Notes: generated from the letters alone by a model not told the origin. Positions 1,882 through 64,000 are shown, counted from the stretch's first letter. The stretch: 64,000 nt of DNA from Piromyces finnis finn (GCA_002104945.1 MCFH01000001.1:868001-932000); one strand, 5' to 3'. A program made the numbers and translations.

Positions 1882-5830
<3,949 letters not shown>

Positions 5831-11833: not shown

Positions 11834-12331
11834 ATTTTATAAAATTATATACATGTATATATATACCTTCTGGATTTTCAATTCTCGTAAGTTTTTCCAT
11901 ATTTTCTAATAAAGATTTCTATATATTATAAATTTTACAAACTAATTAATGATTTGTTTATTTATTTACTTTTTATGTATTTATTTTATACTTTATTCCT
12001 AGTATTATTAATTCTATTCTTTTTATTATTCCTTGATATCATATTATAGTAAAATATAGGTATATATATATATACATATACACTTTACCACTCTTTTAAT
12101 ATCTTTCAAGTTTTTTCTATATCTTAGGTTTGGTGAAGTGCCGTCACCACTTGTTACACTCTTGTTTTCTAAAAAATATTCTTTTGGAAAGGGATCGCAT
12201 AAATATTCTGCATTACTTGAACTTACGGAAGCATAAAAGAAATCTACAAGAAGATCACGTCCTAGAACATTATGCATTCTTTTTCTAACATTAGTTTGTT
12301 TATTATTATTATTACTATTTGGTAATGCCAT
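10322..12331 (-). CDS. PARP16: Multi-exon PARP16/ARTD15-like tail-anchored ADP-ribosyltransferase
   Basis: Exons give DPFPKEY, YAYHGSSFENFHSILHYGLQTNLNK / RSAFGKGIYTSVDL / VALCEIIKHPD / DLPP / EYFIIKNNAHIRVTHLLVY and a C-terminal hydrophobic helix FLIILFILYFLLMYYL. This is the motif order of PARP16. The last exon junctions are less certain. Confidence 0.75.
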
Positions 12332-12353
12332 ATTATATTATATTTATTATATT

Positions 12354-12397
<44 letters not shown>

Positions 12398-13495
12398 TTA
12401 TCTATATATTTTGTTGATAATGTTGCCAATTTTCTTTTATTATTTTAAAATTTTGTTTTAAAATTATTCCTGATTTGAAAGTTTATTCTTATTTTTATTA
12501 TTTATACTATTTTAGAATTTATATATATTTGTATATATATGTTTTTTTATTTTAAAGTTATTTTTATTATTGATTTTATTGGTATTGTTGTTGTTGTTGT
12601 TTCATTCAAATTTACTAATTACCTATTAATTTAAATTCTTTATTAAAGTAATATTATATATTAAAATAGGTATTGATATTATCTCTTGCTATTAATTTTA
12701 TTATTAATTATAGAGTTTGATTCTTTTCTTTATTATTAGTATTATTTCTTAAAGAAATAATAATAAAATATGCAAGGTCTTTTTTTTTTTTAAAAAAAAT
12801 AATATTGATGTATCAATAACTTTTAAGTTTATTTTTTTTAATTAATTTTTTAAAAAAAAATGTTAATTATTTAAATTAAAAAAAAATATATATAAACTTT
12901 TTCATTCTTTAAAGATTCTTCAAAAACGAAAAAATAAAAATTAATTATTGTAGCTTTAATATTATAACACAAAGGAAGGTTTTATTTCTAAAATAACAAT
13001 GAATAAGAATAAAATAATATTATTTATTTATATAAATGTCTTGTTAATATACATTTTACCAATATAACATAGTTTTAAATTTAAAAGGTTTGATTTTCTT
13101 ATTAAAAATCTGTAATTGTATCTTCTTTTAAAATTGATAATAAATGTATTTACTTTATAATAAAACCTAAAAAATATATACTGATATTTGCTTTATATTA
13201 AAAAGGTTTATCCCATATTAATAATAAAATATACGTATGAATATATTCTTCATTTTCTTTTTTTAGTTTTATTATAATCTCTCTCCTCTATTTAAAAAAA
13301 AAAAAAGTATACGTATACTTTTAATAATACAAATTATGAAATCAACCAATAAAAAATCAATTTTCAATTCATAAACTTTAATAATTTAAAAAAAAAAAAA
13401 AATTATTTAGTTCCAAGAAAGTAAATTATATATTTATTTTAAAACTAAAAAAGGGAATTAACTTTAAAATTTCTTAATATACAAAATATATAATA

Positions 13496-33716: not shown

Positions 33717-35652
33717 ATGAAGTTCTTAAATATTATTTCTACATTATCTTTCTTAGCATTATCTGTTAATGCTGGATTTTGGGATAATGTCAACAGAACT
33801 GAACTTTTTTCAATAATGGAAGAAAGTGTCCCAGAAATGCGTATTACTTTACCAGAAAAGAAGTGGAAAAAGATGATTGAAGAAGGTCAAGTTGTTGAAC
33901 AAGAAGAAAAGTCTGAAACTGATTATGCTGCTAATTTAAAATTTATTTATGAAGGGTAATATATTTAAAATATATTTATTAAAAGTTTAATTAAAAAAAA
34001 AAAAAAAAAAAGAAAAACATCTAAATTAATATTTAATTAATTTATCAAACTTTAGAAAAGAAGAAAATTACGATATTTCTTTCAAGTTTGGTGGAAAATC
34101 TACTGCTACTTTTACTAAGCCAGGTTACAACATTAAAATTAAGGGTAGTGAAAATACTTTACATGGAACTAAAAATATTCGTTTAAGAAGCGATCTTCGT
34201 GACGCTTCTATGATGCGTTCTAAGGTTACCACTGATATTTTACAAAAGAGTGGTTTAATTGCTACTGAAGTTGGTTACACTGAATTATATATCAATGATG
34301 AATATATGGGTTTCTGGGTTGTTTCAGATTCTATTAAGAGTAAATGGATCCAAAGAAAGTTTGGTGTTTCTGAAGAACAAACTAAGCCATTATATCAATG
34401 TAGAGCTGATTTCATTAGATTAGATAATGGCTCTGCTAAGCAATTATGTGTTAATGCTAATGAAGAATACAAAGATTATATGGAACCATTCAACAATTTT
34501 GTTGATGCTGTTAATGCTGCTAAAACTAGAGAAGATTTAGAAAAAATCATGGATGTTGATAACTTCATTAAGTACCTTGCTTGGGAATACTTAATGGGAT
34601 CATGGGATCACTTCAGTAACGTTTATGGTCATAATATTTACTGGTACCAACAACCAAACGGTAAGTGGGTAATTATTCCATACGATCACGATATTGAATT
34701 AGGTCAAGAACTTTGGACTACTTATTGTAAGGGTACTGCTCCATACTGTGATTACGATGATGTTGATTTTGCTAGAGTTCCATACGATCAATTTGAAACT
34801 GGTCACCCAATTATTAGAACTTTAGTTCATAATGATGATACTAAGTTCCGTGAATGTCTTGGTGATATTGTTAGTAAGGTCTTCAATCCAGATACTATTT
34901 TAATTCAACTTGATAAGGTTAAGAAGTTAATTTCACCATACGTTAAGAGAGATAGAGATACTCTTGCTGGAAGAATCAATAAGAAGGGTAAAGAAATTAT
35001 TTACACTTATGAACACTTCCTTGGAAACACTGAATACACTTATGTCCATAATATTGTTAATACCGTAAGAGATTATGGTCTTAAGGATTGGATTCGTCGT
35101 CGTTACGAATATGTTGCTGCTTACTATGGTATTAATACTGAAGCTACTACTTCCGATAAGAAGCATAAGTTAATCGAACCAAGACCAGAACCAGTTATTT
35201 TACCATACAACCTTACTGTTACTTCTGAAAAGATTAATGATGATTACGCTTACCTTACTATTCAACCACCACTTCCAAAATACACTCCAGATAAGAACTA
35301 CGCTGATGACCGTGTTCCAGTTATTGGTGTTAATCAATACCTTCTTTCAAAGTCCGAAAACCCATCTAACCCATCTAAATGTTGGTCTGAAGCTTTTGGA
35401 TACAAGTGCTGTACTAAGGGATGTAAAACTATTGTTAATGTTATTGAAAATGGAAAATACTGGGGTGCTGAAAATGGTGAATGGTGTGGTATTCCAGATA
35501 ACTGTGAATTTGAAAAGGATGAATGCCCAGGTATCAAGTACGGTTATGAATGCTGTGAAAAATGTGATGTAGTTGAAACTGATGAACTTGGACAATGGGG
35601 TGCCATTAATGGTGAATGGTGTAGTATTAAGAAGTCTTGCAACAAGCAATAA
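33717..35652 (+). CDS. cotH: CotH-family kinase with signal peptide and two dockerins (paralogue 2, single intron 33956-34055)
   Basis: MKFLNIISTLSFLALSVNAG signal; FKFGGKS, GSWDH, IPYDHDIELG; two C-terminal dockerins (CWSEAFGYKCC...WGAENGEWCG; CPGIKYGYECC...WGAINGEWC). Confidence 0.93.
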
Positions 35653-37668: not shown

Positions 37669-40600
37669 ATGTCAGTCCTTTATTTTAAAGATAAGAATTA
37701 TATCAGACGTGGTACCCGGTCTTATGGTATCCCCTTAGATGATATTCGCTCCTTCTTTATCCGTGGTATTCGATCATGGTCAGTAAATATGCTATGGGAA
37801 AAACTCGAGGTTATTCTAGAAGATAAATTTAATTCAGTTATTAGTGTTAAATATTTTCAGACTTTCAATGATCACTTTTTCTTAGTCAAGGTTCATGGTT
37901 CATCAAAAGATTGTATTAAAATCTTACACATGTTAAAGAAGAAACTTTCAGTTACCTCAATTTCCTTTTCAGCTCGTAGTAGAAGGAATCACAAATACAC
38001 TTTTTCCACTCTCAAACGTAAAATTTTAGTTTCTAATAAACATCAACATTCTATTCAACAATCATTTCAACAATCAGTTCAACAATCAGTTCAACAATCT
38101 CATCAACAATCCGATCTTCAACAAGATCTTCAACAGGATCTTCAACAAGTTTCCCATCATGAAAATATTCCAGATCTACAGCAAACACAATTTCAATCTC
38201 AACATTCAACAATTAATTCTAATAGTTCTATCAACTCTGATAACAGTTCAATAGTTGATAGTTCTTCAGTTTCACAGCCATCTAGTAATAGTTCTACTTA
38301 TTCCTCTGATGCATCATCCATTAATAACGATGACTTTAATAATAATAATAATAGCAACGATTCTTCCTCATCCAACAAGCCTGATAACTTTTCTTTTTGT
38401 CTTAGTTGGAACACCAATGGGTGGAATCATGAAAAGAGAGATAGTATTAGCTATTTCACAGCTATTTTCAAACCATTATTCTTATGTTTCCAAGAAACTG
38501 GTAATGGTTCTGGATCGAATACAGATTATCCTTGTCGTGTTACTTTGCGAAACTATAGACACTTTTTCAAGAAAGCTGACGAATCAGTTCCGGGAATGAG
38601 AGGTTTATATTTAGGTTTTCACAATTCATGTCAAGCCTCACTTGAAAACTTCTCTGGAAAGTATATTATTTCTATTTATACTTTTAGTCTCTGGAATAGA
38701 TTCAAATGCTCGATTGGAAATGTTTATATGCCTCATAGTCATCACAACATCTATGTTGATCATGCAAAGTTAGAAGTTCGCTTGTGGTTACAAACTCATT
38801 CATCCCATCCATCGATTCTTGTTGGTGATTTTAATATGTCTAAAGTAAAATTATCCAACTGGTTATCAACTAATGGATTAGGAGATTGGGAAATTCTTCC
38901 GCTTAGAGGGTCTACTATCTCTTGGACTCGAGGTGATCAATCTTCCGACATTGACCATGCTCTTATCAATTCGAAGATGAAAGATCTTATTCACTCAGGA
39001 TCATTTATAAATAATTTTTATCCTGTATCAGACCATAAGCCACTTCTTATTAATGGTAAAATTATTCCTATGGAAGATTTTTCTAATGACTTTAATGTTC
39101 CTAAGAAAATTCTGAAATGGAATAGATTAAAATGTATTGAGGAAAAGGAATCTATTCTCAGTCATAATAAATTCCAAATACTTTCAGCAAAATTCAACGA
39201 TCCTAATGTTTCTACAGATGAACTTTCCAAAGAGTTTACTTCAACTGCTTTTTCAATTGCAGACGAGCTCAGTATTACCTCAGCAAATAATGTTATAAAG
39301 TCTTCATTTCATATTTCACAACAAATTTTTAATCTTCAAAAAATCAAAATGAAGTTGTATAAGAGATTTAAAAAAGAAAGAATTTATGATATAGATGAAT
39401 TTATTAAAAGAATTAAAATCTACCGTAAGCTCATTGATTACATCCACAAAAGATGTAATGAATTTAGGAAGCAAGAATATCTTCATTGGATTAAAACAGG
39501 ATGTGAGTATATGAAGAGTCATAATCCTAAGAAGGCCTGGAAATGGATCAAGAAAACTGCAAAAATTGGAAAAGATTCTTTCTTTATTGCTCAACCAATT
39601 AAAAATAAAAATGGAGAATTAGTTGTTGCTACGGAAGAACTACTAGATGTGTGGCATGATCATTTCGAAAATCTTGCATCAGACCCAAGTGGTGTAAGTC
39701 TTGATTTGGAGCATTGGTATGAAGAACCAACGAATAAACGTTTTTCACTTCCTATGCTTGATGAGTGGGATATCAACCAAGATATTAGTATTGATGAAGT
39801 CAAGTCAGCTATCCTCACTACTCCAAATTATAAAGCATCAGGTCCGGATGGTATTCCAATTGAATTTTACAAAGCATTAGTTCCATCAAGTAATGATTCT
39901 AATAATGCTACAGATAATAATTCTTCTGGTAATACTACTTCAGATAATGATGCTCATGGTTTAAATTTTATTCTTAAATTATTCAACCGTATTTGGGATG
40001 GAGATTTCCCCAACTCATGGAATGAATCCAGTATTGTTTCTATTCCTAAGAAGGGTGATTTGACAGATTGTGATAACTATCGAGGTATATCACTTATCAA
40101 TAATGGCATTAAGTTGATTTCCAAAATTGTCACCACTAGAATCTCAGAATATGGTTTAAAGAATAATTTCATTAGACCTGAACAATTTGGTTTTCGAAAA
40201 AAGGAAGAAAGTATTAGTCTTTTCATTTCAATCCAAGAAATATGCCGTAGACGTCAATTAGATAATAAAGAGACATATTTGGCCTTTTTAGATCTCAGGA
40301 AAGCATACGATTCAGTCCCAATCGGTAATATTCTCCATAAATTAGATTGTTTAGGAATCCGAGGTAAGAGTTTACAATTTATCAAAAATTTATATTTAAC
40401 ATCTAAGGCTAATGTCAAATTAGATGGACAATTCTCGAAATCTTTTGATGTGAAGAAAGGAGTCCGTCAAGGTTGCCCTCTTTCTCCTATTCTCTTTAAT
40501 CTCTTTATTAATGATATATTTAGAGAGTGCGAAGATCTAGGAGTCAGTTTAGGTGACACTCGATGCTGTGGTGGACTTTTTGCAGATGATATAGTTATTT

Positions 40601-42204
40601 GTGCTCCAACAAGAGGATGCTTAAAAAAGATGCTTAGAAGAGTTAATGAATGGGCATTGTATAATGAAATGGAATTTGGTATCCAGAAATGTTCAACGAT
40701 GGTGATTCGTCCTGAATCAATAGAAAATCAGAACAAGAGAGATCCAACATTTTACTTAGCAGGACAACCCATTCCAACTACTGATTGTTATACTTATCTT
40801 GGTGTTCCATTTGATAAGAATCTGTCCCTTAAACCAGTAATTAAAGCTCTTAATAACAAGGTTTTGAAAGGGCTTTTCTCAGTCAGTAAATTCTTAAGAA
40901 ATCCTAATATTCCTATTCCTTTCAAAAAACTAGTACTTAACTCACAAGTGATTAGCAGAGTTTCATACTTTGCACCATTACTTGGATCCAACAAAGCTAG
41001 GTCTAGGATTGCTCAGAAGCATGTTAACAAAGGAATACGATGGGTTGCCGGAGTTCATAAAGCTGTATCGTTTATATCTTTATACTCTATTTCAAAAGAT
41101 TTGAATATTCCTCCATTGTCAGCCAAATGTGCGTTAGCTCAGGTTAGATGTTTTAACAAATGGAAAAACTCAAATTGTATTATCTCACACCTTGTCAATT
41201 ACATTCCTAAATTTAGAAAATACACGTGGTGCAAATCAAGTAGGACACTTGATAAAAAATTAAAGAAACATGGAGATGTTAAAGCAGTTAAAAACTTTTA
41301 TTGGAAAGATCTCAAAGGGAATTCAATCAAAGCGCAATATTATGATGATAATAAATTTATTGAAACTAAAGATTTTATTAAATTATGTTATGAGTACCCA
41401 GAGTTTGCCTATGGCTTCTACTGGCTATTGAAAGCAAGAAGCGGATACAAGTTGGATGCTAGAGTTGCCAAAGCTGCCAAATTTGTTGATCCAGTTTGTC
41501 CTAACTACTGTCCATGTTGCAAGTGTGGAGATCAAAGTATTAAACATTGGTTATTAGATTGTCCAACATTTAGAGATATCCGTATTAAACATTATGATTC
41601 TATAGTCCAGCTATTAAATTTTTTCAGTCAACGTAATTCCAATAGTCCTATCAATAATAATGAAATTGATAATATCAGTAGAGATAGTAATAACATTAAT
41701 ACTAATAGTAACAATAGTAGTAATAACAATAGTAATAGTAACAATAGTAATAGTAACAATAGTAATAATAACAATAATAGAAATAATAATATTAGTAATG
41801 ATAGCAATAGTGAAGATAATAATTCTAATTTAGATAGTAATTTAGTTAATGATAGTAATAGTTCTAATAATCCGGTGAATATTAATGTGTATGATTATTC
41901 TAGTGTGTGCAGTAAAATATTTAAATTCCTTCTTGGGGGAAGAAGTTTTAACAATATTAATTACAATTCAAGGGAATGGAAAGAACTTTGTAAGCGTCAG
42001 ATTCAATCTGGTACTAACGAAGGAACACCATTCTTGACGGTAACCGCGGAACTTCTAACCAAAATCATGCCTTTTGCTATTGGCCAGCAATGGTCAATGT
42101 TCAAAAGGTTTGAAGCAACATCCAAGAGCGTCAATGCTGAAGAAACAGTAAGACAGGCCAGGAGGGCCAGCGCAACCAATGGAGATCATAATTTTGTTCC
42201 ATGA
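37669..42204 (+). CDS. LINE polyprotein: AP endonuclease, reverse transcriptase and C-terminal Cys/His zinc finger
   Basis: APE motifs SWNTNG, FQET, VGDFN, IDH, SDHKP; RT motifs GPDGIP, NYRGISL, EQFGFR, LDLRKAYDSV, GVRQGCPLSPILFN, LFADD, YTYLG; CPCCKC...IKHWLLDC. Confidence 0.96.
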   Translation: MSVLYFKDKNYIRRGTRSYGIPLDDIRSFFIRGIRSWSVNMLWEKLEVILEDKFNSVISVKYFQTFNDHFFLVKVHGSSKDCIKILHMLKKKLSVTSISFSARSRRNHKYTFSTLKRKILVSNKHQHSIQQSFQQSVQQSVQQSHQQSDLQQDLQQDLQQVSHHENIPDLQQTQFQSQHSTINSNSSINSDNSSIVDSSSVSQPSSNSSTYSSDASSINNDDFNNNNNSNDSSSSNKPDNFSFCLSWNTNGWNHEKRDSISYFTAIFKPLFLCFQETGNGSGSNTDYPCRVTLRNYRHFFKKADESVPGMRGLYLGFHNSCQASLENFSGKYIISIYTFSLWNRFKCSIGNVYMPHSHHNIYVDHAKLEVRLWLQTHSSHPSILVGDFNMSKVKLSNWLSTNGLGDWEILPLRGSTISWTRGDQSSDIDHALINSKMKDLIHSGSFINNFYPVSDHKPLLINGKIIPMEDFSNDFNVPKKILKWNRLKCIEEKESILSHNKFQILSAKFNDPNVSTDELSKEFTSTAFSIADELSITSANNVIKSSFHISQQIFNLQKIKMKLYKRFKKERIYDIDEFIKRIKIYRKLIDYIHKRCNEFRKQEYLHWIKTGCEYMKSHNPKKAWKWIKKTAKIGKDSFFIAQPIKNKNGELVVATEELLDVWHDHFENLASDPSGVSLDLEHWYEEPTNKRFSLPMLDEWDINQDISIDEVKSAILTTPNYKASGPDGIPIEFYKALVPSSNDSNNATDNNSSGNTTSDNDAHGLNFILKLFNRIWDGDFPNSWNESSIVSIPKKGDLTDCDNYRGISLINNGIKLISKIVTTRISEYGLKNNFIRPEQFGFRKKEESISLFISIQEICRRRQLDNKETYLAFLDLRKAYDSVPIGNILHKLDCLGIRGKSLQFIKNLYLTSKANVKLDGQFSKSFDVKKGVRQGCPLSPILFNLFINDIFRECEDLGVSLGDTRCCGGLFADDIVICAPTRGCLKKMLRRVNEWALYNEMEFGIQKCSTMVIRPESIENQNKRDPTFYLAGQPIPTTDCYTYLGVPFDKNLSLKPVIKALNNKVLKGLFSVSKFLRNPNIPIPFKKLVLNSQVISRVSYFAPLLGSNKARSRIAQKHVNKGIRWVAGVHKAVSFISLYSISKDLNIPPLSAKCALAQVRCFNKWKNSNCIISHLVNYIPKFRKYTWCKSSRTLDKKLKKHGDVKAVKNFYWKDLKGNSIKAQYYDDNKFIETKDFIKLCYEYPEFAYGFYWLLKARSGYKLDARVAKAAKFVDPVCPNYCPCCKCGDQSIKHWLLDCPTFRDIRIKHYDSIVQLLNFFSQRNSNSPINNNEIDNISRDSNNINTNSNNSSNNNSNSNNSNSNNSNNNNNRNNNISNDSNSEDNNSNLDSNLVNDSNSSNNPVNINVYDYSSVCSKIFKFLLGGRSFNNINYNSREWKELCKRQIQSGTNEGTPFLTVTAELLTKIMPFAIGQQWSMFKRFEATSKSVNAEETVRQARRASATNGDHNFVP

Positions 42205-45299: not shown

Positions 45300-47400
45300 A
45301 TATTCCCTGTATAAATTAAATATCTGACTTTTTACAATTACGGAAAATACTAAACCATAATTAGATTAATACATGAGTGAATATCAAGGCATATTAGATT
45401 ATATAAAAATCATATTAATTATTTTTGTGTTACACCGTTTTTACCATTATTATTGTTTTTGTCCCCCAAAACCCTTTTTTGTGTTGGATTAAAAAAAATA
45501 TATAAATATAAGATAATAAAGAAATACTATAAATTTATCAAAAGAAAAGATATTTAGCAATAAATATAATATAAATAAATCAGTACCTAAATAAATTAAA
45601 ACTGATAGTTCTACCCTTTTAATAATAAAAAAGCCAAAAATATTGTACAAAAGAAATAAATAATGCTCAACGCAACAATGGATAAATAAACTAACAAAAT
45701 TGTTGAATCAGGTTTAGTGATTTCTAGTAAAGAGATAAAGAAGAAAACAAATACTAAAAGATATTTTTATCGAGTTATGAGATTTATATGAATAATATAT
45801 TTGTTCTCTCAATGATATTTATCTAAATCCATAATCATATATTTATATACTTTTAACCAATCATGTACCTTAGTATTTGAAGATAAAGTAAAAATAGGGT
45901 ATATTGTTTGACGTTTTGAATTGATATTAAATAACATTAATTGTAATAATATGTAAACTATTTTATTGATAAAATGATATTAAATTATTTAGAAAAGTCA
46001 ATAAATACTTGTTCAAGGTTAGATTGACTGATTGTGTAATCCTTAATAAGCATTTTTTTCATGGCATCTTCCATCATTTCAAATAATTTTTCTATACATA
46101 TTAGTAATCGGAAATTGATATTTGAAATGGTTATCAGTGATACATTCGAATTTATAATTATTTAGGGAAAAGTAATTTTTGGATCTAAAAAGTAACTCAT
46201 GTACAATTTCTTTGTTGATTATTTTGAATTTCAACAATATAACTATCGGCATATTTCTTTTTTAAATATTCTGGTGATCCCATACACACAAGACGACCAT
46301 TGATTAAACTAAACAGTCACATAATTCTTGTGCTTCTTCTATTAAATATGTAGTTAAAATGATGGAAGATTTATTATTTTCTTTCACTTCTTTAATCATA
46401 TCCCATACGAATAGACGAATAACTGGGTCAATACCAGCTGTGGGTTCATCTAAAATAATTTGATTTGGGGAAGCGCAAATAGTTAATAAAATGCATAATT
46501 TATGCTTCACTCCTCCACTTAAATTTTTAACCGGTTTGTTTTTGTGTTCATCAACTTTAAAATATTTAATATACTAATCAATGTATTTATTAAGTTGTCT
46601 GGAACACCACAAAGTTTTAAGAAGAGGCGAACATAATCAAGAATACTTAATTCACCCCCATATAACATTTTCTTGAGGACAATAGCTAATGATTTCTTTA
46701 GATTTATATGAATCAATACCATTGAAATGAACATTTCCGGTAGTTTGAGGGAAATTAGAGGAAATGATATTTAAAATAATTAATTTACCAACACTGTTTG
46801 GTCCTAATAAACCAAAACATTCCTTTTTCTTCACTCCAAAAGTAACATCCTCTATAACAGTTTTAATATACTTTTTTAAAAGAATAGGCTGAACAGTGGA
46901 TATCATCGTATTGATAATTTTTATTTTTTTTTTTTTGAGTTTTTCTTTTTCACTTTTATCAAAATCAATATCAACAGAAAAATCATTAGTTATATGTAAA
47001 ATGGTATGGCCGCTTTGATGTACGCTGTTAAAAATACAGATTTTATTTCTGTTATTAATACTTTTATTAAATATAATAAATTATTAAATATCATAGATAA
47101 AAACTGAGAGAACGTTTTTTTTCATTCCTTGGAAAATAATGAAGTCCTTTAAAATTAATGGAAACAAGTTTTAATAAACCATTTTAATAATATTCTTTTA
47201 TATTGTTATAAAAATGATATTTCTAAACCACTTAAAATATTAATTATCAATAAACAACTTATATAAAAATGATATTTCTAAACCACTTAAAATATTAATT
47301 ATCAATAAACAACTTAATGTAAATTTGGCTGACACTGAAAATAAAACAGCAGGAAACACTGAATAAATAATACTTGAAACAAAAATTATTTTTAATTATA
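45300..47400 (-). pseudogene. Fragmented ABCA-subfamily transporter pseudogene
   Basis: ECFGLLGPNSVGK (degenerate Walker A), YCPQEN, SGG signature preceded by a stop, IILDEPTAGIDP, LTTYLIEEAQELCD and SNLEQVFIDF are spread over several frames with stops. Hydrophobic transmembrane-like remnants flank them; outer limits are approximate. Confidence 0.78.
47207..47316. repeat. Exact 55-bp tandem duplication within the ABCA pseudogene region
   Basis: TATAAAAATGATATTTCTAAACCACTT...AAACAACTTA occurs twice head to tail. Confidence 0.85.
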
Positions 47401-48614: not shown

Positions 48615-51654
<3,040 letters not shown>

Positions 51655-52799: not shown

Positions 52800-53116
52800 T
52801 TTTTATTCTTTTTATTATTATTGAGTAGAATTATATAATAGATAAAGAAATAAATAAATATATTGTAAGTGCTTTCTTTTTTTTTTTTTTTTTTTTAATC
52901 TTTTAAGAATATTTAATTGAATAAATTAAATATCTTTTTTTTTTTTTTATTATGCCAAAACAAAAATCAAAAATAATAAATTGAATCGTTTTTATAGAAC
53001 TTTTTTATAATGTCCAAAATTTTATCAAAAAGACCAATACCTAGATTTTATGAACATATTTATATAGTAAATTTAAAAAAAATGTTAATAATAATTTTTA
53101 AAAGAACATTTTTTTT

Positions 53117-53334
53117 TTAATATAAAAAGGTTCATGTTCATTAATTAATAATTGATATGATTAATATAAAAAGGTTCATGTTCATTAATTAATAATTGAT
53201 ATGATTAATATAAAAAGGTTCATGTTCATTAATTAATAATTGATATGATTAATATAAAAAGGTTCATGTTCATTAATTAATAATTGATATGATTAATATA
53301 AAAAGGTTCATGTTCATTAATTAATAATTGATAT
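53117..53334. repeat. Perfect 44-bp tandem repeat, about 5 copies
   Basis: TATAAAAAGGTTCATGTTCATTAATTAATAATTGATATGATTAA units start at 53121, 53165, 53209, 53253 and 53297. Confidence 0.95.
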
Positions 53335-55166
53335 AATATGAATTATATGGGATATGCTTTATACATTTTTATGTTATGTTGAGTCGTATTAATATATTAA
53401 TATAAAAGCTGTATAAACATAAAATAATAATAATTGTAGAACAAAAATATTATTATATTTTATAATTAATATTTTTTTTTTTTTTTTCATTGTAAAGTAA
53501 TAATGAAATGCAATTCATGGATTCTTTTAGAGTATTTACCCAACTTACATGTCCAAAAAGAAATATTCATATTTATATTTATATTAAATACAATACATAA
53601 AAATACATAAAATATGGGTTGAAAATGTATTTATTTCACAAATATATTTATCTATAAAGGGTTAGTTTTTATATTGAAAGGATTAGTTAATTTCAATATA
53701 TATTATTAATTAATAATAATGAATAGTTTACCAATTAAACATTTTTTTTAATTAATATATAAAACTTTATTAATTAATACATTAATTAATATATACAAAG
53801 GGTTAAATTATATATTTTTTTCTCAAAATAATTAATAGTATATATTTATTAAAAAATATTAGCTAACTCTAAAAAAAAAAAGATAAAAACTAAAAACATA
53901 TTTTAAAAGAATAAAAGCTTTTTTTTTTTACTATTACTAATTCTTTTTGGCAAAAAAAAAAAAATTAATTTTTATTATATAGTTGATATTTATATTTGTT
54001 TAAAATATGAAATTTTTTTTAAATATTAACATATTTATAGATAATGATCAAGTTCTTTTATAAAAATAATTTAAAAGGTTTATATAATTATTAATGTAAA
54101 GAAAAAAAAAAAGAGATCATTTTAAATACATTATAAAAATGAGAAAGAGAAAAAAGTTAAGCTAATATACTCTTTGTTATTTATGTTTTATTATAAATAG
54201 ATAATAAAGTTTTTTTCATTTTTTAGAAAAAAAAAGATTTATATAGAAATTGACATAAACTCTTTAAAGAATAATAGTACATTATTCTTTGTTTGAAAAA
54301 TAGTTAATTTTGTGTTTTGTATTTGTATTAATTAAATCCTTCAATAATACAAAGAAAAAATAAGTTTAAACTTTTTTGGATAAATTAGATATTTTATAAG
54401 GTGTTAATATTTAAAAAAAAAAAAAATTATTAATATATAAACTATTAATTAATTAAAAAATAAAAAAAAAAAAGAAATAATTAAATTTCATATTTATTAT
54501 TAATTATATATTTAATAAAGTATGATTTATTTTAATTAAGGTCAATACTGTAAATACAAATTAATTAAAAAAAAAATGTAATAAATAGTAATGAATATAA
54601 ATGATAATATATATTTATAATGAAAGTTTAGATATATATAGGTTTGCATTCTATATTAACATATAAGTTATAGAATAAATAAATAAATATTTCAATAATA
54701 AAAATTTCAAATTTTTTTAACTTATAGGACAACAGTTATTAAAAGTTGCTTAACATTGTTTTTCTAAATTATATATATAAATAGAAAGAAAAAAGCGCAA
54801 AAATATAAGAAGATGAACAAAGTTTTATTAATTATATTAATCATTTGTTCATTTGTTTGGTTATTCCTAAGTATTTATAATTAATAATAATAATAGTATT
54901 CCATGAAAATTATTATAACTTATTAAAAGTGATACACCAAAACATTACAAATTATTACTAGAAGATAAAAGGTAAAGCAATTCTATTTTAAAACCATTTT
55001 TTTTTTTTATTTTTATATATCATTCTTTTTTTAATTAATATACATTATTGTACAATAGATTTATCTTAATTAAAAATAAAATATTAATATTAAATAAACT
55101 TTGTAATTATATGAAACCTATTTTTTAAAAATAGAACAATTTAGTATAAATATAAATTATAAATAT

Positions 55167-55204
<38 letters not shown>

Positions 55205-55236
55205 ACTGCTGCATATATTGTATTTCATAAAACCAA

Positions 55237-57195
55237 ATGACCAATGTTAAAAAAGATAGTTTTGTAGAGGAACCTGTATGTCTAAAAATCCCATTAAATT
55301 TGGATAGTGACTTTGTGGATTTACTTAATAGAGATCCTAGAGGAGAATTAAATCAAGAAACATGGAAAAAATTATTAGCTATAGAAGGTTTAGGTTTGAA
55401 TTTTTTAGATATTATAAGAAATTTTCATGATGTGATTAATTATGGTTCGGATCATAGTATTGATCCTAATGCCAACTTTTCAATTGGACGTTACAAATTT
55501 TACACTAAAGAAATTCATGAAGCATTGGCTTCCCATAAAAAATTTGTTAATTTTTCCCAATTTTTTAATCATGTAAAACGTCTTTATGGTGCTGAAGAAG
55601 CAAAAGATCTATTTCGTACATGTATATGTGGAGATAATTATTTACATGATTCTTGCTATCTTTTTGTTCCATATTGTTATGCCATGTCAGTGGAACCTAT
55701 CATTAAAAATGGTATTATATTTAATAAACAACTACGTTCTTTTCCACCAAAACATGCTAGAAGTTTCATTGGTCAAGTTGCTGAAACTGTTACTAGTATG
55801 TCTCAAGAATTAGCTGGTGCTATTGCTATTGCTGACATTTTTGTGTATTATACCTATTTTCTTCAGAAAGAAGGTATTGAAACATTGGAAGGTTATTCTA
55901 AAAAAATTCTGAAAATTGAAAATGATTTTCAATCCCTTATCCACATTTTAAATTCTTCATATCGTGCTAATGGTCAAAGTGCTTTTACCAATATTTCCAT
56001 TTTTGATATGCCAAGTTTAGAACACTTATTTGGTGAACTTTACTTTCCAGATGGATCTCAACCAAACTTAAAATTAGTTATGGAAATTCAAAAGATTTTC
56101 TGTAATTGGTTTGCCCGTGGTCAATTAAAGGATTCTCTTTTACCATACCCATTCCCAGTTGTTACCTTAAATTTAAAGGTTAATGATAACAAGGAAGTTA
56201 TTGATCAAGAAACCTTCAAATATTTCTGTGAAATTAACTTGAATGGTCTTTTCAACTTTTTTGTTAGTGATTCTAATAAATTAGCATCTTGCTGCCGTGT
56301 TGTTAATAATCTTAATGTTCATATGAGTGTTTTTGGTGAAGGTGGTGTTAATATTGGTAGTTTAAGAGTTATTACTATTAATTTAGCTCGTATTGGTAAC
56401 GCTGTGGCTAAAGAAAATGGGGATATTAATGTATATTATGAAAAATTAGATAAACAATTAGACAAAGCCTATCGAATGCTTTTAGCTCATCGTGAATTTA
56501 TTAAGATCCAAATTCAACGTGGGGCTTGTCCATTCTTTGGTGAAAAATTAGGTTTTATGTTTTTAGAAAGATTTTTCCTTACTATTGGTATTAATGGTCT
56601 TTATGAAGGTTTAATGGAGATGGGTTACAATATGCTAGAAGATGAAGGTTTAGAGCTTGCTCGTAATATATTAGATCGTATTTCTAATTATGCTAATGCT
56701 AAATGTGATACCAAAGAAAAGATTTTATTTAATGTTGAACAAGTTCCAGGTGAATCTTTAGCTATTAAAAATGCTCTTAAGGATAAAATTGTTTGTGGTA
56801 TGAATTATCCTATTTATGCCAATCAATTTGTACCACTTTGGTCTGATGTTGAAATAGAAGAACGTATTAAAATTGATGGTGATCTTGCTAAATATATGAG
56901 TGGTGGTTGTATTAGTCATATTAATTTAGGGGATCGCATTGGAAGTGTACAACAAATGGAAAAAGTAGTAAACTATGCTATTAAGAATCATTGCGAACAT
57001 TTTGCTATCAACTATTGTTATAATTGTTGTGAAAATGAACACGTAACAATTTCTGGTGCGACGGAAATTTGTCCAATTTGTAGTGGAAAAATTATTGATC
57101 ATGTTACAAGAATTGTTGGTTATTTCACTTCAGTCAGTTCTTGGTCACCCGAAAGACGTGAAGAATTTAAAACAAGAAAGTTTACTAAGATTTAA
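55237..57195 (+). CDS. nrdD: Class III anaerobic ribonucleoside-triphosphate reductase, catalytic subunit (copy 1), intronless
   Basis: YLHD, PYCYA, PPKHARSF, AGAIA, QSAFTNISIFD, PYPFPVVT, ASCCR finger loop, IGSLRVITINLAR, EQVPGES, GGCISHI, CENEH...CPIC metal site and the TRIVGY glycyl-radical motif; no N-terminal ATP cone. Confidence 0.95.
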   Translation: MTNVKKDSFVEEPVCLKIPLNLDSDFVDLLNRDPRGELNQETWKKLLAIEGLGLNFLDIIRNFHDVINYGSDHSIDPNANFSIGRYKFYTKEIHEALASHKKFVNFSQFFNHVKRLYGAEEAKDLFRTCICGDNYLHDSCYLFVPYCYAMSVEPIIKNGIIFNKQLRSFPPKHARSFIGQVAETVTSMSQELAGAIAIADIFVYYTYFLQKEGIETLEGYSKKILKIENDFQSLIHILNSSYRANGQSAFTNISIFDMPSLEHLFGELYFPDGSQPNLKLVMEIQKIFCNWFARGQLKDSLLPYPFPVVTLNLKVNDNKEVIDQETFKYFCEINLNGLFNFFVSDSNKLASCCRVVNNLNVHMSVFGEGGVNIGSLRVITINLARIGNAVAKENGDINVYYEKLDKQLDKAYRMLLAHREFIKIQIQRGACPFFGEKLGFMFLERFFLTIGINGLYEGLMEMGYNMLEDEGLELARNILDRISNYANAKCDTKEKILFNVEQVPGESLAIKNALKDKIVCGMNYPIYANQFVPLWSDVEIEERIKIDGDLAKYMSGGCISHINLGDRIGSVQQMEKVVNYAIKNHCEHFAINYCYNCCENEHVTISGATEICPICSGKIIDHVTRIVGYFTSVSSWSPERREEFKTRKFTKI

Positions 57196-60100
57196 TTGTT
57201 ATATTAGACCGTCAATTAATAATCTTATATTTCTCATAATTCCAAATATTTAAATCAATATTATATTACCAATATTATCTAAATATATTTATATATCATT
57301 TTTAATTTATTTATTTATATTTAAAAATAAAATATATATGTTTTTTTTTTTCTCGTTTTTCACATTCATTTTATTTTAATACAGATTTTATTAGAATCTT
57401 AATAAATTAATTTTTTAATAAAATAATTATAATAGTAATAGTTTATGTAATGTGGATTAATAAAAAACAGAATTATTCCACATACCAGCATTATATTATC
57501 AAATGATATATTTGATTAATAAACCAGTATAATATATATAGTATTAAATACACACCTATTAAAGTTATTAAAGGTTTACACATAACAAAAAAAAAAAAAA
57601 AAAAAAAATATATATATATACATAAAACAATAAAGATTACATTATTATAAAATTAACTTTTTCTCAAATATTTTAAAACTTTTTCTTTTTTCTTTTTTTT
57701 TAGAAAGCATAAAACATAATTGTTATTTAAATATAAAATTTTGTTAAAGGTTAATTAATAAATATATATTATATTTTAAAATGATCTAGTGTAAAGACTT
57801 TTTTTTTTATGAAGAAGTCATAGTAACTCATAGTGCAGATATAAAGTTTCTTTTTTTATGATTACTTTAAGGATATATACCATTTTACAAAACTTGCTTT
57901 AACGATATATATAACATGTTATATATTATATACATTTAATTAACATATAGAAAAGATAGTATATATTTTTTTATTTTATTATTTTATTTCAAAAATAAAA
58001 AATACTTATAAATTATATCTTTTTTACATATTGTACATATTTTTTAATAAAATCAAAAGTTTAAACTTTTTTTTTTCATTGTCCCAAATTTAATTAAATT
58101 TTCAAAGATTTTATTTGTTGAAAATGATTTAATATATAATACAATATAATCATAATATATTATAATTTTAATTCAAAAATTTTCAATACAAAAGAAAAAT
58201 TAAATTAGAATTGATGTTAATGTAACTGTATGAAAACCTTGACATATAATTAAAACTGAAATTGAGGTAAAGATGAATAAGCCATAGAATAATATGTTTC
58301 TGTAAAAATATAACATCAATTTTATTTTTCACGAACCTAATTTTATCAAGGCTATAGAGTTTTATCTATAATTTGTAATAATTAAAATATGTGGAGAAAG
58401 TTTTGTTTCTTTAAAGAGCTTTGTGATAATAACCATTTCTTCTTTGACATTAAAAGAATGCTGATACTATCAATGCTATTAACAATGAATTATATCTTTA
58501 CGTATAATAATTTATTTCTAATGACAATATTTATTTCAAAAGAATTTAATTAACCATATTGAGATTCATTAGATTTTCTATTTTTTTATGAATTTTTATT
58601 ATATAATTTTTCATTTCTTTCAAATTTATATTATATATTTGTTTAATGAATAAGTTAATTGATTATATGAAAAGTATAAATTAAAGATTTAAAATTAAAA
58701 CATGTCATAAAAACGATCTTTATAATATATATTTCTATATAAGCACTATTTAAGTATACATAATTAAGCAAAAGAGAAAAATCATCATTTATGTAATAAT
58801 TTTAAATTAGGATATAAAAACTGGTCGCAAAACAATAGTAGATAGTTTTGATTTATAAATGTAATTTAATAGACATTTAATTGTTAAATATTTTTATAAA
58901 TGCTTATTTCTTTTTTAATTTAAATTTTAAGAAACATAATAGTAAATATAATTGAAATATAATAATAAATAGAATAGATGGATGGTGGTCAAGTCGTTCA
59001 ATTATAAAAAAATATATAAAAAAGATATTGTCCTTTTTTTTTTATTATTTAATAATAATATCTTTTCCATTTTAAAACTCATATTGCTGCTCAACTTGAT
59101 GATACGATTTTATTTTTTTCATTATATATAATTAATATATTAAAAAATAAGCAATTATTTTTTTATATATTAGGAATTATAATTAAATTTAGGTTTAAAA
59201 AAAATTTATTTTATTATATTGTATTTTTTTTTTTGCAAGTTACGGACAACATATTTTTTTTTAAACTATATATTAATAATTAATATCGTTTTTTTTTCCA
59301 TGACGATTATTATTAGTATTATTATTAATATATAGGTAAAGAAGATGATAGCGGAAAAAATTCCAGATAATTAATATTATCTTTTTTTTTTTTTTTTCAT
59401 AATAAACCTAAAATTAGTTATTACATATGTTTATAAAAGTTAATTTCGATTATTATATGGAAAAAAACTCATTATTAATTATTAATATAATAGTATAAAA
59501 ATAGAATAACATAATAATATATAATATAATAATATAATAATATATAATGCTCATTTACTTCCTTTATAATTCATGTATTATACATTTATTAATTCTATAT
59601 TTCACAATTAAGAATAAATGAATTTATATCCTTTAAGAGATGTTAATATTATTTTGTTGGTGTGTGTTAAATCATTAATTCTATTAATTCTTTTACTACA
59701 TTTGATCGTAGGAAGAAATCATTTATTTGTAAATTGATTTAATCTTTTTTTACACTACTAATAAATCTTAAATCATTTAGTAAAGATGTAAATTAAATAT
59801 TCTACAGAAATAATAATTATAGATAAAACTAATGAAATATACATTTTTTCTTTTTAGATTATTAAATAACCTATCGTTTGACTATTGTAATAAGGCTATA
59901 ATAGTATTAATTTCATAAGAATATCTTTCAGAATAAAAGTGAATTCAAAGGAAATCAGAAGTATATAAATTATAAATTGATTCGTTTATTACAATTATTA
60001 ATAAAAACAATAATAATAAAAAAAAGGTTTAAATACAGATTATTTTTAGTGAACTATGTTTTATTTTTTTTATGAACATGTGAAGAGAATTAAAAAAATG

Positions 60101-60983
60101 TAGTTTACTTTCTCTTTTGATCTACTTTGGTTTATTATAGCCTGACTTATTCTTTAAATGTAGGATTCTTTACCAGTCGCTAAACACCAAAAAAAAATAA
60201 ACTAAATAATATATTATTTTATAATAAATTAATATGTTGTTCAATATACTATTTTCATAATTTAATATATTGATCCATATATAAAATTAATACATAATTA
60301 TAAATATTTATCCTATTTATTTTGAATATATTTAATATAATATAAAATATTTTTAAATGGCTTCATATATAAAGAGTTGTTGAAATGAATTCATATAAAT
60401 ATATTATAATAAATTATACTTATATATTAATGAATCATAATATATTTTATAATTTTTTATATTTTAATTATTATTTTTTATTATATTGTGTCAATATATT
60501 ATAATATATTAGACTTGATTTATATATTTTATATTTTTTTACTTTTTTTTTTCTGATAATTAAAATCAGTTTTTATATATAAAAATTTAGAAAAAGGATG
60601 GACAATAAAAAAAAAATTTTTTTTTATTATAATATGTACTTAGCAAACTATTATTGAAATCACTTAAATCTCTGAAAATATAAAAAGAAGGAGAATGACC
60701 TAAAAAAAAAATTACTCATTATCTTATTCAAAAGTATTCTTTAAAAAAAAATAAAAATAATATTTCTTAAATAAAAAGATATAATAATAATAAAAGAAAT
60801 ATTATTTTTTATTAGTGTAAAAGAATTAAATCAAATTAAATTACAAAAGGAGAATATAATAAATAAAATTAAAAAAAATTTATAACATTTTAAATTGCTA
60901 AAAGAGCATACATTAGTTTGAAAAAATAAAAGTACAGTTTAAAATATCATCAAAGTATATAATATATATAACAATATTACAAA

Positions 60984-63005
60984 ATGTTGACTGAAGCTGA
61001 ATTTAATAACTCTACTGTTCCAAAGACTGTTGATATTAATAAAATTAAGGAAGCTCAAAAGACTGAAAAGACTGAAATTAAAACTGTAAAGTTACAAGTT
61101 CCACTCGGTCTTGATAGAGATTTCATAAACTTATTAAATTATGATCCAAAAGGTGAAATTGATGATGCTACCTGGAGAAAATTATTATCTCTTGAAGGTT
61201 TAGGCTTAAACTTTTTAGATGTTGCCCGTAATTATCATGATGTCATCAACTATGGTTCTGATCATAGTATTGATCCAAATGCTAACTGTTCTATTGGTAA
61301 ATACAAGTTCCACTCCAAGGAAATTCACGAAATTTTAGCTCCACATCAAAAGCTTATCAATGTTTCTCAATTCTTCTCTCATGTTAAATCTTTATATGGT
61401 GCTGAAGAAACTAAAGATTTATTCCGTGCTTGGATTTATGGTGACAATTATTTACATGATTCATGTTATCTTTTCGTTCCATATTGTTATGCTATGTCTG
61501 TTGAACCAATTGTTAGAAATGGTATTACTTTCAATGCTCAACTTCGTTCCCTTCCACCAAAACATGCTAGAAGTTTCATTGGTCAAGTTGCTGAAACTGT
61601 TACTAGCATGTCTCAAGAATTAGCTGGTGCTATTGCTATTGCTGATATCTTTGTTTACTATGCTTACTTCCTTCAAAAACGTGGAATTGAAACTTTAGAA
61701 GGTAGAGAAAAGGAATCTTTAGAAGTTGAAAACGATTTCCAAAATTTAGTTCACATTTTAAATTCTTCCCACCGTTTCTCTGGTCAAAGTGCCTTCACTA
61801 ATGTTTCTATTTTTGATATGCCAAGTTTGGAACACTTATTTGGTGAACTTTACTTCCCAGATGGATCTCAACCAAACTTAAATTTAGTTATGGAAGTTCA
61901 AAAGATTTTCTGTAATTGGTTTGCCCGTGGTCAATTAAAGGATTCTCTTTTACCATACCCATTCCCAGTTGTTACCTTAAATTTAAAGGTTAATGATAAT
62001 AAGGAAGTTATTGATCAAGAAACCTTCAAATATTTCTGTGAAATTAACTTGAATGGTCTTTTCAACTTCTTTGTTAGTGATTCTAATAAATTAGCATCTT
62101 GCTGCCGTGTTGTTAATAATCTTAATGTTCATATGAGTGTTTTTGGTGAAGGTGGTGTTAATATTGGTAGTTTAAGAATTGTCACTATTAATTTAGCTCG
62201 TATTGGTAATGCTGTTGCCAAGGAAAAGGGTGATTTAGATAGTTTCTATGAAAAATTAAATGTCCAATTAGATAAGGCTCACCGTATGCTTTTAGCTCAT
62301 CGTGAATTTATTAAGATCCAAATTAAACGTGGTGCTTGCCCATACTTTAGTGATGATTTAGGTTTTATGTTTTTAGAAAGATTCTTCCTTACTTTTGGTA
62401 TTAATGGTCTTTATGAAGGTTTAATGGAGATGGGTTACAATATGTTAGAAGATGATGGTTTAGAACTTTCACGTCAAATTTTAAATTACATTACTGAATA
62501 TGCTAACTCAAAGTGTGACTTAAAGGAAAAAATCTTATTCAATGTTGAACAAGTTCCAGGTGAATCTCTTGCCATTAAACATGCTCTTAAGGATAAAATT
62601 GTTTGTGGTATGGATTACTCTATTTATGCCAATCAATTCGTTCCACTTTGGTCTGATATTAACTTGGAAAAGCGTATTAAGATTGATGGTGATCTTACAA
62701 AATATATGAGTGGTGGTTGTATTACTCACATTAATTTAGTTGATCGTATTGGTAGCGTTCAACAGATGGAACAAGTTGTTCGTTATGCCATTAAGAATCA
62801 ATGTGAACATTTTGCTATCAATTACTCATATAACCGTTGTGAAAACGATCATATTACCATTTCTGGTAATACTGATGTATGCCCAATCTGTAGTGGTAAT
62901 GTTGTTGATCATATCACTAGAGTTGTCGGTTATTTCACTTCAGTTAGTGCTTGGTCACCAGGAAGACGTGATGAATTCAAAACTAGAAAGTTTACTAAAT
63001 ATTAA
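60984..63005 (+). CDS. nrdD: Class III anaerobic ribonucleoside-triphosphate reductase, catalytic subunit (copy 2), intronless
   Basis: Same motif set (ASCCR, EQVPGES, CENDH...CPIC, TRVVGY); collinear paralogue of copy 1 with a longer, acidic N-terminus. Confidence 0.95.
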   Translation: MLTEAEFNNSTVPKTVDINKIKEAQKTEKTEIKTVKLQVPLGLDRDFINLLNYDPKGEIDDATWRKLLSLEGLGLNFLDVARNYHDVINYGSDHSIDPNANCSIGKYKFHSKEIHEILAPHQKLINVSQFFSHVKSLYGAEETKDLFRAWIYGDNYLHDSCYLFVPYCYAMSVEPIVRNGITFNAQLRSLPPKHARSFIGQVAETVTSMSQELAGAIAIADIFVYYAYFLQKRGIETLEGREKESLEVENDFQNLVHILNSSHRFSGQSAFTNVSIFDMPSLEHLFGELYFPDGSQPNLNLVMEVQKIFCNWFARGQLKDSLLPYPFPVVTLNLKVNDNKEVIDQETFKYFCEINLNGLFNFFVSDSNKLASCCRVVNNLNVHMSVFGEGGVNIGSLRIVTINLARIGNAVAKEKGDLDSFYEKLNVQLDKAHRMLLAHREFIKIQIKRGACPYFSDDLGFMFLERFFLTFGINGLYEGLMEMGYNMLEDDGLELSRQILNYITEYANSKCDLKEKILFNVEQVPGESLAIKHALKDKIVCGMDYSIYANQFVPLWSDINLEKRIKIDGDLTKYMSGGCITHINLVDRIGSVQQMEQVVRYAIKNQCEHFAINYSYNRCENDHITISGNTDVCPICSGNVVDHITRVVGYFTSVSAWSPGRRDEFKTRKFTKY

Positions 63006-63789
63006 ATTTAATAATTTTTTATTATAATAACAAATATATATCTAATTTATATACCGTCATTTTAGTAGAGTGAACAAATTATATATTTTATAATTATCAT
63101 ACATTTACAATAATTTAATTTTTAAAATAATCTTATTTATTTTTAATATACCATATGTTTGTAAAAAAAAGCATAACTACTTTATTTAATCATCATCGTT
63201 TTCAGAATAATTTTGTAATTTTAAAATATTTTTGTTTTTAGTATTTATCATTAATTAATTAATAAATAAATTCATCGTATTTAAAAAAATATAAATTTTA
63301 AAAGAACCGAAAAAAGTGTTCGTTTTTGGTGTGCTTTTAATAACAGTTTTGGAATTACAAATTTGTGAATTGAATGATTGAGTTTTTCATTTATCAATTT
63401 GTGTATTAGAGACGACTTTCCACCTTAATTTTTTTTACCCCATCAAATAAATTTATATGATTTTTTATTAAATAATTAAAATAAAAAATTATTTGATAAT
63501 AATTTATTTCTATATCTCTGATATAAAATATATATTAATTGAATGCTTTCATTTAAATAAACAAAATAATAAAGATTCTATTATATTTATTATATTTTAT
63601 GTACTTGTAATAATACTAAAAAATATATTTTGACAGTATATGAAAATTAATGAATTAAATCAATCAATAAATAATTATTTTAATAGAAATCTTAAAGTTG
63701 TATAATAGATTGATAAGCTTATCATAAAATATTCAATTTCAATTTATAATATAAACAATGATTTAATTATTTTTTAATTTTAAAGAAGA

Positions 63790-63824
<35 letters not shown>

Positions 63825-64000
63825 AAATTACGAGTATTGACGTATATATACCAGGAAGACATATTATATTATTTTTCAAAAAAGTAAAAAGCAAAAAGTT
63901 AAAAAAAAAAGTATATAAAGTAATTTATTTTTAGGATTAATTTTTATAATTTTATTGATAATTTAAAATTTATTTTTATAAATAAGAATTAATTTAATTA

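Follow-up and report, generated by a model that had tools for sequence, protein, structure and literature searches.

The NrdD proteins of anaerobic gut fungi (AGF, Neocallimastigomycota) have been described as oxygen-sensitive class III ribonucleotide reductases (RNRs) of horizontal origin, with Dependentiae (TM6) as the nearest bacteria. As far as the available text of these sources goes, the AGF NrdD tree of Murphy et al. 2019 (bioRxiv 10.1101/487215, Fig. 5D) groups with the candidate phylum Dependentiae, Wang et al. 2019 (PMC6712302) name NRDD as one of 40 Pfam domains found in AGF alone of the chytrids compared, and a 2024 paper on tortoise AGF (Nat Commun, PMC10978972) reports NRDD, with TM6 as donor, in tortoise and mammalian AGF. 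Here, we analysed two genes of this same family and phylum, nrdDa and nrdDb, which lie in tandem in a stretch of 64,000 nucleotides of the Piromyces finnis genome (GCA_002104945.1, MCFH01000001.1:868001-932000), referred to below as the window. The acquisition of NrdD by AGF from Dependentiae/TM6 is already published, and in this respect the finding is real and mostly known. What is added here is the conserved tandem layout, the apparent status of sole RNR and nearest relatives that are linked nrdD-nrdG pairs closer than Dependentiae. In their available parts, the three papers contain no mention of a tandem pair, a third paralog, an unlinked nrdG, a lack of class I/II enzymes, redoxin-type residues, gene conversion, or Quaeritorhiza and virus-like relatives.

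Among characterised enzymes, NrdD of Thermotoga maritima (4COI, 4U3E; NrdDh in RNRdb) resembles the fungal proteins in its cysteine C125, the SCCR motif, Glu495, the zinc site, the RxxGY motif and the lack of an ATP-cone. It is nevertheless clearly divergent; the fungal proteins carry N-terminal extensions of 12 to 80 residues, and the long disordered insert that follows SCCR in the bacterial enzyme is missing from them. The NrdDh subclass is recognised by its SCCR motif, the T. maritima mutants C329A and C330A are inactive, and the reductant of this enzyme is a protein larger than 10 kDa (PMC4493059). Judged by the motif descriptions in PMC4493059 and in the available text of PMC4390871, the class III RNR of Neisseria bacilliformis follows the same subclass logic, with an extra active-site cysteine, thioredoxin as reductant and Glu438 as base (PMC4390871; Wei et al. 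2014, cited in PMC4493059 and PMC4390871). The enzymes of E. coli and phage T4 are likewise NrdG-activated glycyl-radical enzymes with a zinc ribbon and NTP substrates, but they use formate as reductant and have a loop of the MGCR type with a single cysteine, as in T4 (PMC4493059, PMC4390871), and the E. coli enzyme has an ATP-cone. The likeness of the fungal proteins to this branch is weak (Prevotella copri 8P23, E = 4e-9, C-terminal part only). In the nrdG-nrdD operon of Babeliales/Dependentiae (GCA_023133515.1, L009), NrdD is 43-47% identical to the fungal proteins with the same residues and nrdG lies immediately upstream, overlapping nrdD, whereas the fungus carries nrdG on a different contig and has three nrdD copies, with eukaryotic, AT-rich flanks.

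Catalytic residues and RNR complement of the genome

The upstream gene nrdDa spans positions 55237 to 57195 and the downstream gene nrdDb positions 60984 to 63005, both on the plus strand, and they encode proteins of 652 and 673 amino acids which are 83% identical in a gap-free alignment. An ORF (open reading frame) scan of positions 53000 to 64000 gave exactly these two ORFs of at least 100 amino acids, both on the plus strand. The original prediction of two intact, intronless nrdD genes 3.8 kb apart was borne out: both coding sequences are uninterrupted and without intron, the match to the NRDD model being nearly full-length, and the gap between them measures 3,788 bp at 16% G+C, in a window whose G+C ranges from 14 to 34%. 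The spacer annotated from 57196 to 60514, also at 16% G+C, contains no ORF of at least 100 amino acids.

Both proteins and the product of a third gene, nrdDc, matched Pfam PF13597 (NRDD) at about 1e-85, with 288.3 (nrdDa), 291.2 (nrdDb) and 286.3 bits (nrdDc) against a cut-off of 26.2, over model positions 14-560 of 562. The best NCBIfam models were all anaerobic ribonucleoside-triphosphate reductases, with NF006127 first, followed by the Bdellovibrio-type TIGR02827; NF006127 is the best model, yet the three proteins are not strict members of it. The best solved relative of nrdDb was the T. maritima enzyme (4COI/4U3E, E = 4e-78, residues 66-670). The reducing bottom-face cysteine is found in PYCYA (Cys147 in nrdDa, Cys168 in nrdDb, Cys213 in nrdDc; C125 in T. 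maritima, C79 in T4), the cysteine pair of SCCR at 352-353, 373-374 and 418-419 (C329/C330 in T. maritima), and the glutamate of FNVEQVP at Glu501, Glu522 and 570, respectively (E495 in T. maritima, which we take to be equivalent to E438 of N. bacilliformis). SCCR and the glutamate, present in all three copies, are invariant in an alignment of 13 sequences, and the catalytic and zinc residues as a whole are conserved throughout the three copies and 84 relatives. A zinc site of the form C-x3-H...CxxC, aligned with the T. maritima pattern, is present in all three copies (C619/H623/C633/C636 in nrdDb), and the glycyl-radical motif RxxGY, kept in 83 of 84 aligned relatives, reads RIVGY in nrdDa (G628), RVVGY in nrdDb (G649) and RIVGY in nrdDc (G697). 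No ATP-cone (PF03477) was found in the three proteins, whose N-terminal extensions are short and non-conserved, nor in the genome by a six-frame profile search. By domain, radical motif, zinc site and cysteines, nrdDa, nrdDb and nrdDc are predicted class III RNR catalytic subunits, and at the level of sequence their residue pattern is that of the redoxin-type NrdDh subclass (Thermotoga/Neisseria). Prokaryote-type class III RNRs, as had been claimed, are indeed encoded in this fungal chromosome.

The survey of nrdD, nrdG and class I/II genes that had been proposed along with the original prediction was run on this genome, and it yielded three nrdD genes, one nrdG-like gene and no class I/II gene. 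The third intact nrdD, nrdDc (G000:C152:528311-529894, L003:1492-3651, minus strand; 719 amino acids), is unlinked to the tandem pair; about 80 residues, acidic and rich in Ser/Thr, extend its N-terminus, and it falls in a distinct 'long' lineage of AGF sequences (P0014-P0018). A single radical S-adenosylmethionine (SAM) activase resembling NrdG, of 198 amino acids with CX3CX2C and GGEP motifs, is encoded at G000:C211:1221939-1222352 (L004:1375-1971, minus strand), unlinked to any nrdD. Its three best NCBIfam matches are the three NrdG models (59-68 bits), each below its equivalog cut-off, and it shares 89-93% identity with further AGF sequences and 54% with the protein that Quaeritorhiza encodes beside its nrdD. 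The set of its relatives matches that of NrdD, with linkage to nrdD in sister taxa, and the organism is accordingly predicted to encode a cognate NrdG activase.

In six-frame searches of the 56-Mb genome with hidden Markov models (HMMs), no class I/II large-subunit barrel (PF02867), N-domain (PF00317) or R2 (PF00268) was found, while positive controls in reference genomes were recovered for each domain. A comparable six-frame search of this genome yielded five exon-sized matches to thioredoxin reductase, 13 matches to thioredoxin and at least 15 pyruvate formate-lyase (PFL) genes. Since the multi-exon thioredoxin reductase, the thioredoxins and PFL were recovered, introns and AT-richness do not blind the search. 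The three NrdDs are apparently the only RNRs of the organism, and the absence of class I/II domains and of an ATP-cone strengthens the oxygen-independent route to deoxyribonucleoside triphosphates (dNTPs) that had been proposed for this obligate anaerobe. In the literature searched, no paper was found to say that class I RNR is missing from AGF; the lost-domain list of Wang et al. 2019, in its available text, has no Ribonuc_red entry, and the supplement text of Murphy et al. 2019 and Wang et al. 2019, as far as available, holds no per-strain NrdD table.

We consider it very probable that nrdDa and nrdDb are functional class III RNR catalytic paralogs in an AGF chromosome, forming an old tandem duplicate and, with nrdDc, the sole RNRs of this fungus. 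This view is carried by the identity and intactness of the genes, their residues, setting and duplication history, and the absence of other RNRs, from which activity, reductant and division of labour are inferred. To our knowledge, there is no other de novo route to dNTPs than ribonucleotide reduction, for which eukaryotes nearly always employ an O2-dependent class I RNR. In a eukaryote whose sole RNR is an oxygen-sensitive glycyl-radical enzyme, a core replication function would have been swapped by gene transfer during adaptation to anoxia, and in the rumen such an enzyme would be a fungus-specific, non-host target. The general point of an RNR swap is already in the literature for AGF, and no new kind of system is described here; what is added on architecture and phylogeny is modest, and is offered as testable hypotheses on a sole RNR, three paralogs with one activase, a probable thioredoxin dependence, an asymmetric tandem with conversion and closer relatives.

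Several points weigh against this interpretation. All three proteins narrowly miss the equivalog cut-off of NF006127 (PRK08271) of 545 bits, with 525.0 (nrdDa), 515.3 (nrdDb) and 517.8 bits (nrdDc), and the NrdG-like ORF is clearly below the NrdG equivalog cut-off (68 vs 126 bits). The absence of class I/II enzymes rests on HMM searches in one assembly. As for the redoxin-type chemistry, the crystal structure of the T. maritima enzyme puts SCCR away from the active site, and the exact role of the cysteine pair is unsettled (PMC4493059). Moreover, formate is available as an alternative reductant, being made abundantly via PFL.

Relatives and origin of the nrdD genes

In the NrdD phylogeny, an unrooted gene tree obtained with IQ-TREE, the AGF sequences formed one clade (100/99), in which a 'long' lineage holds nrdDc and a 'short' lineage holds the tandem genes. 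This phylogeny had been suggested as a check, and besides grouping the AGF it placed Quaeritorhiza and virus-like relatives closer to them than Dependentiae. NrdD of Dependentiae/Babeliales, found in nrdG-nrdD operons, is 43-47% identical to fungal NrdD, while the closer non-AGF relatives reach 55-60% identity and are joined to AGF with a support of 100. One of them comes from the non-AGF chytrid Quaeritorhiza haematococci, in which a divergently oriented nrdG-nrdD pair occupies positions 2866-3657 and 4238-6127 of JADGJF010001677.1 (L008); this contig has a host-like G+C of 52%, its annotated neighbouring genes bear introns, and nrdG adjoins nrdD. NRDD is therefore not confined to AGF among zoosporic fungi. 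A 2026 preprint reports that, of all fungi, Quaeritorhiza alone has the anaerobiosis gene rquA, in keeping with a gene kit for low oxygen.

Another close relative lies on a contig of 677,814 bp and 55% G+C (L006; ENA ERZ19610909 ptg000166l), with nrdD at 8001-9929 and an nrdG-like gene 2 kb away at 11905-12435; this GC-rich contig is eukaryote-like in its content of an endonuclease/reverse transcriptase of the long interspersed nuclear element (LINE) type, RING and DM9. On short metagenome contigs with close NrdD relatives, nrdG again adjoins. The contig of NrdD P0026 (L019; ENA ERZ27292723 k141_46586) has 26% G+C and is 86% coding. The product of a neighbouring gene passes the Pfam threshold for DUF5767. 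The Atlas clusters of this family belong to Nucleocytoviricota in 100% of cases, and the domain was present in 120 of 120 homologs of this neighbour among the matches listed, whose taxon names were uninformative; a pyrimidine-dimer glycosylase gene lies beside it. The next clade out, joined with a Shimodaira-Hasegawa-like approximate likelihood ratio test (SH-aLRT) value of 87, holds an NrdD 77% identical to P0058 from an IMG/VR contig of a giant-virus metagenome-assembled genome (GVMAG), and this contig (L020; GVMAG-M-3300009169-13_000001) also carries kinase-like, FkbM methyltransferase and ankyrin/F-box genes. The NrdG relatives rank in closeness as the NrdD relatives do. Probably, the cassette was taken up with nrdD and nrdG still linked, and the two genes came apart later in AGF.

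A direct origin from Dependentiae has to be weighed against a different route, in which the nrdD-nrdG pair came from a pool of giant viruses (Nucleocytoviricota), zoosporic fungi and protists, possibly before Neocallimastigomycota arose, the genes being separated and nrdD triplicated afterwards. This route is a possible one, to which we give the smaller share of credence. It draws on the fact that the nearest non-AGF relatives are not Dependentiae but sequences from chytrid, eukaryote-like and virus-like contigs, namely the intron-flanked pair with adjacent nrdG of Quaeritorhiza, the LINE-bearing 677-kb contig with nrdG close by and the P0026 contig with its DUF5767 and glycosylase neighbours, as well as on the GVMAG contig in the next clade out and the parallel kinship of NrdG. 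However, the sister position of the GVMAG clade is weakly supported at the SH-aLRT value given, the neighbour gene of the GVMAG contig examined in an Atlas search gave no viral signal, and ankyrin, F-box and kinase genes are typical of Dependentiae too. In addition, no capsid or packaging ATPase gene was seen on these short contigs, an unrooted gene tree gives no direction of transfer, and published trees place AGF with Dependentiae/TM6; nothing relevant on NrdD in giant viruses was found in the literature searched. Slightly more tentative still is the wider scenario in which a glycyl-radical RNR of the redoxin type, from an nrdD-nrdG clade that circulates in giant viruses and zoosporic fungi or protists and is still linked in the low-oxygen-adapted Quaeritorhiza, took over fully in AGF from the class I RNR universal in eukaryotes, the route being viral and/or older than the phylum.

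Reductant, duplication and gene conversion

In the mechanism that we propose, the single, unlinked radical-SAM NrdG would put the radical on the C-terminal glycine (G628 in nrdDa, G649 in nrdDb), and the glycyl radical would generate a thiyl radical at the cysteine pair of SCCR that in turn would reduce NTPs to dNTPs. The most likely source of the reducing equivalents would be a thioredoxin-type protein rather than formate, because the proteins have the Cys-Cys pair and the conserved glutamate of the T. maritima/N. bacilliformis subclass; on these residues, we regard redoxin-dependent chemistry as the probable one. As the proteins lack an ATP-cone, no on/off switch by dATP is expected. Use of formate from PFL, as in the E. 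coli and T4 enzymes, would agree with the at least 15 intact PFL genes of the genome and with formate being the reductant of the best-studied class III enzymes. It seems unlikely to us, since the proteins carry SCCR and the glutamate of the T. maritima/N. bacilliformis type instead of the single-cysteine MGCR-type loop of T4, and since both features are invariant over the whole clade; a thioredoxin-type reductant is preferred. As to the PFL genes themselves, those counted as intact are intronless and are distributed over nine contigs, some a few kb apart on the same or opposite strands, and at G000:C44:1-11346 fragments of broken PFL genes, containing in-frame stops, lie clustered.

Regarding the history of the pair, the upstream copies of Piromyces, Anaeromyces and Neocallimastix formed one clade (100/99), and the downstream copies a short-branched basal grade. 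When nrdDa and nrdDb were forced to form a clade, a grouping tested after the tree had been seen, the likelihood was 151 log units worse and the approximately unbiased (AU) test gave p = 3e-6. This rejection indicates that the duplication is older than the split of these genera and is not specific to this genome. Of the horizontal acquisition and duplication initially proposed, the former agrees with what was already published, and the latter stands as an ancient event shared by genera and not as one particular to P. finnis. Outside the coding sequence, no likeness was found between the flanks of nrdDa and nrdDb.

Both copies are under constraint, with a ratio of non-synonymous to synonymous substitution rates (dN/dS) of 0.17 between them. 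For the downstream lineage, comparison with the downstream copies of A. robustus and Neocallimastix gave a dN/dS of 0.075-0.083 and 93% amino acid identity between genera, versus 0.158 and 81% for the upstream lineage compared with its positional ortholog in A. robustus; dN/dS values for nrdDc were discarded owing to faulty trimming of its sequence. We propose that nrdDb would be the conserved workhorse; nrdDa evolves twice as fast and has been partly re-homogenised by gene conversion. As initially suggested, the two copies might form heterodimers or be stage-specific. The conversion tract, delimited by synonymous divergence (dS), a difference map and identities, covers the catalytic SCCR/finger-loop region at 55999 to 56367 in nrdDa and at 61809 to 62177 in nrdDb, both on the plus strand, with an offset of 5810 nt. 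Within it, the two genes show 6 differences in 369 nt (dS 0.03-0.08), while outside it they are about 79% identical with a dS of 0.2 to >1, most windows being at or above 0.5. In the tract, the Piromyces paralogs are 98.3% identical and the orthologs only 86-90%, an order that is reversed outside it, and the tract has thus undergone recent, lineage-specific gene conversion across the catalytic loop. The paralogs of A. robustus, independently, are 93.9% identical in the tract versus 83.9% elsewhere.

The start of nrdDa also differs from that of its closest relatives. A comparison with the N-termini of P0002, P0005 and P0010 showed that, instead of the first 13 codons ('MLT...') of these relatives, the P. 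finnis sequence has a run of 35 A (55168-55202), followed by later codons out of frame (ACT ACT GCT GCA), the whole remnant extending from 55168 to 55213 on the plus strand. Since the ancestral start is replaced by the run, the ORF begins at an internal methionine. This change is either a true loss of 13 codons or a homopolymer error of the assembly.

The asymmetry between the copies raises the alternative that one of them, most likely nrdDa, is redundant and is either being lost or shifting to a role that is non-catalytic or regulatory. The twofold faster evolution of its lineage, the loss of its ancestral start in this genome and the state of its positional ortholog in Neocallimastix 'constans', which has SYDH for SCCR and no glycyl-radical end, speak in its favour. 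We hold this to be improbable, given that all catalytic residues of nrdDa are intact here, that a dN/dS of 0.16 still means strong purifying selection, and that many further AGF sequences belong to the upstream lineage and have kept its motifs intact; two functional paralogs remain the preferred interpretation. The Neocallimastix copy itself (L015:10001-11881) looks degenerate, with an ORF that ends at 550 amino acids, and its annotated 616-aa model is without the zinc-site CxxC and without the glycyl-radical motif.

Chromosomal setting of the tandem pair

The window corresponds to G000:C1:868001-932000, on a contig of 2,625,575 bp, and the genes lie about 0.9 Mb inside it. Head-to-tail nrdD pairs in the same orientation (++) were found in Anaeromyces robustus (MCFG01000342.1, 6.2 kb apart) and Neocallimastix sp. 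'constans' (JBODTK010000071.1, 4.5 kb apart), so the tandem order is kept in at least three genera. A multi-exon myotubularin-like gene downstream of the Neocallimastix pair has an exon-by-exon match about 1.1 kb downstream of nrdDb here; upstream of the pair, no synteny with Neocallimastix or A. robustus was found. The third-position G+C (GC3) of the nrdD genes is 0.16-0.21, compared with 0.20 for the multi-exon gene of thioredoxin reductase in this genome, in agreement with the host-like codon usage noted at the outset. The absence of operon-like neighbours also held, as tblastn found no nrdG or nrdG remnant adjoining nrdD in the window or in the A. robustus and Neocallimastix loci.

The idea that the genes entered the assembly from an AT-rich Dependentiae-like bacterium by contamination or misassembly can be dismissed: although nrdD of Dependentiae (Babeliales), with a G+C of 0.30 and a GC3 of 0.16, matches the fungal copies, so that composition alone does not discriminate, contamination is excluded because the genes lie within a 2.6-Mb contig among AGF-specific neighbours, flanked by fungal genes and retrotransposons, the order of the pair and its downstream neighbour are kept in independent assemblies of other genera, the identity to Dependentiae is merely 43-47% and the locus has no nrdG operon partner. 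The nrdD pair consists of chromosomal fungal genes, as originally predicted.

Two candidate signs of expression were set aside. Four sequencing runs from three studies hold 0.38-0.49 of the words of a 47%-coding stretch; their RNA nature is a guess, so they were not counted as expression. A JGI contig (L011) coding for a 96%-identical protein was considered as a transcript and rejected, having no poly(A) tail and leaving DNA and cDNA indistinguishable.

Further features of the window are a GATA zinc-finger protein (7897-9363), a CotH kinase with two CBM_10 fungal dockerins (34210-35652) and a further CotH exon (50191-50595), a LINE ORF of 1,511 amino acids with reverse transcriptase (37669-42204), and ABC-transporter Walker-A fragments on the minus strand (46519-46906). 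About 1.9 kb upstream of nrdDa, at 53073-53380, an AT-rich unit of 44 nt is repeated six times in tandem, four of the copies being 99-100% identical.

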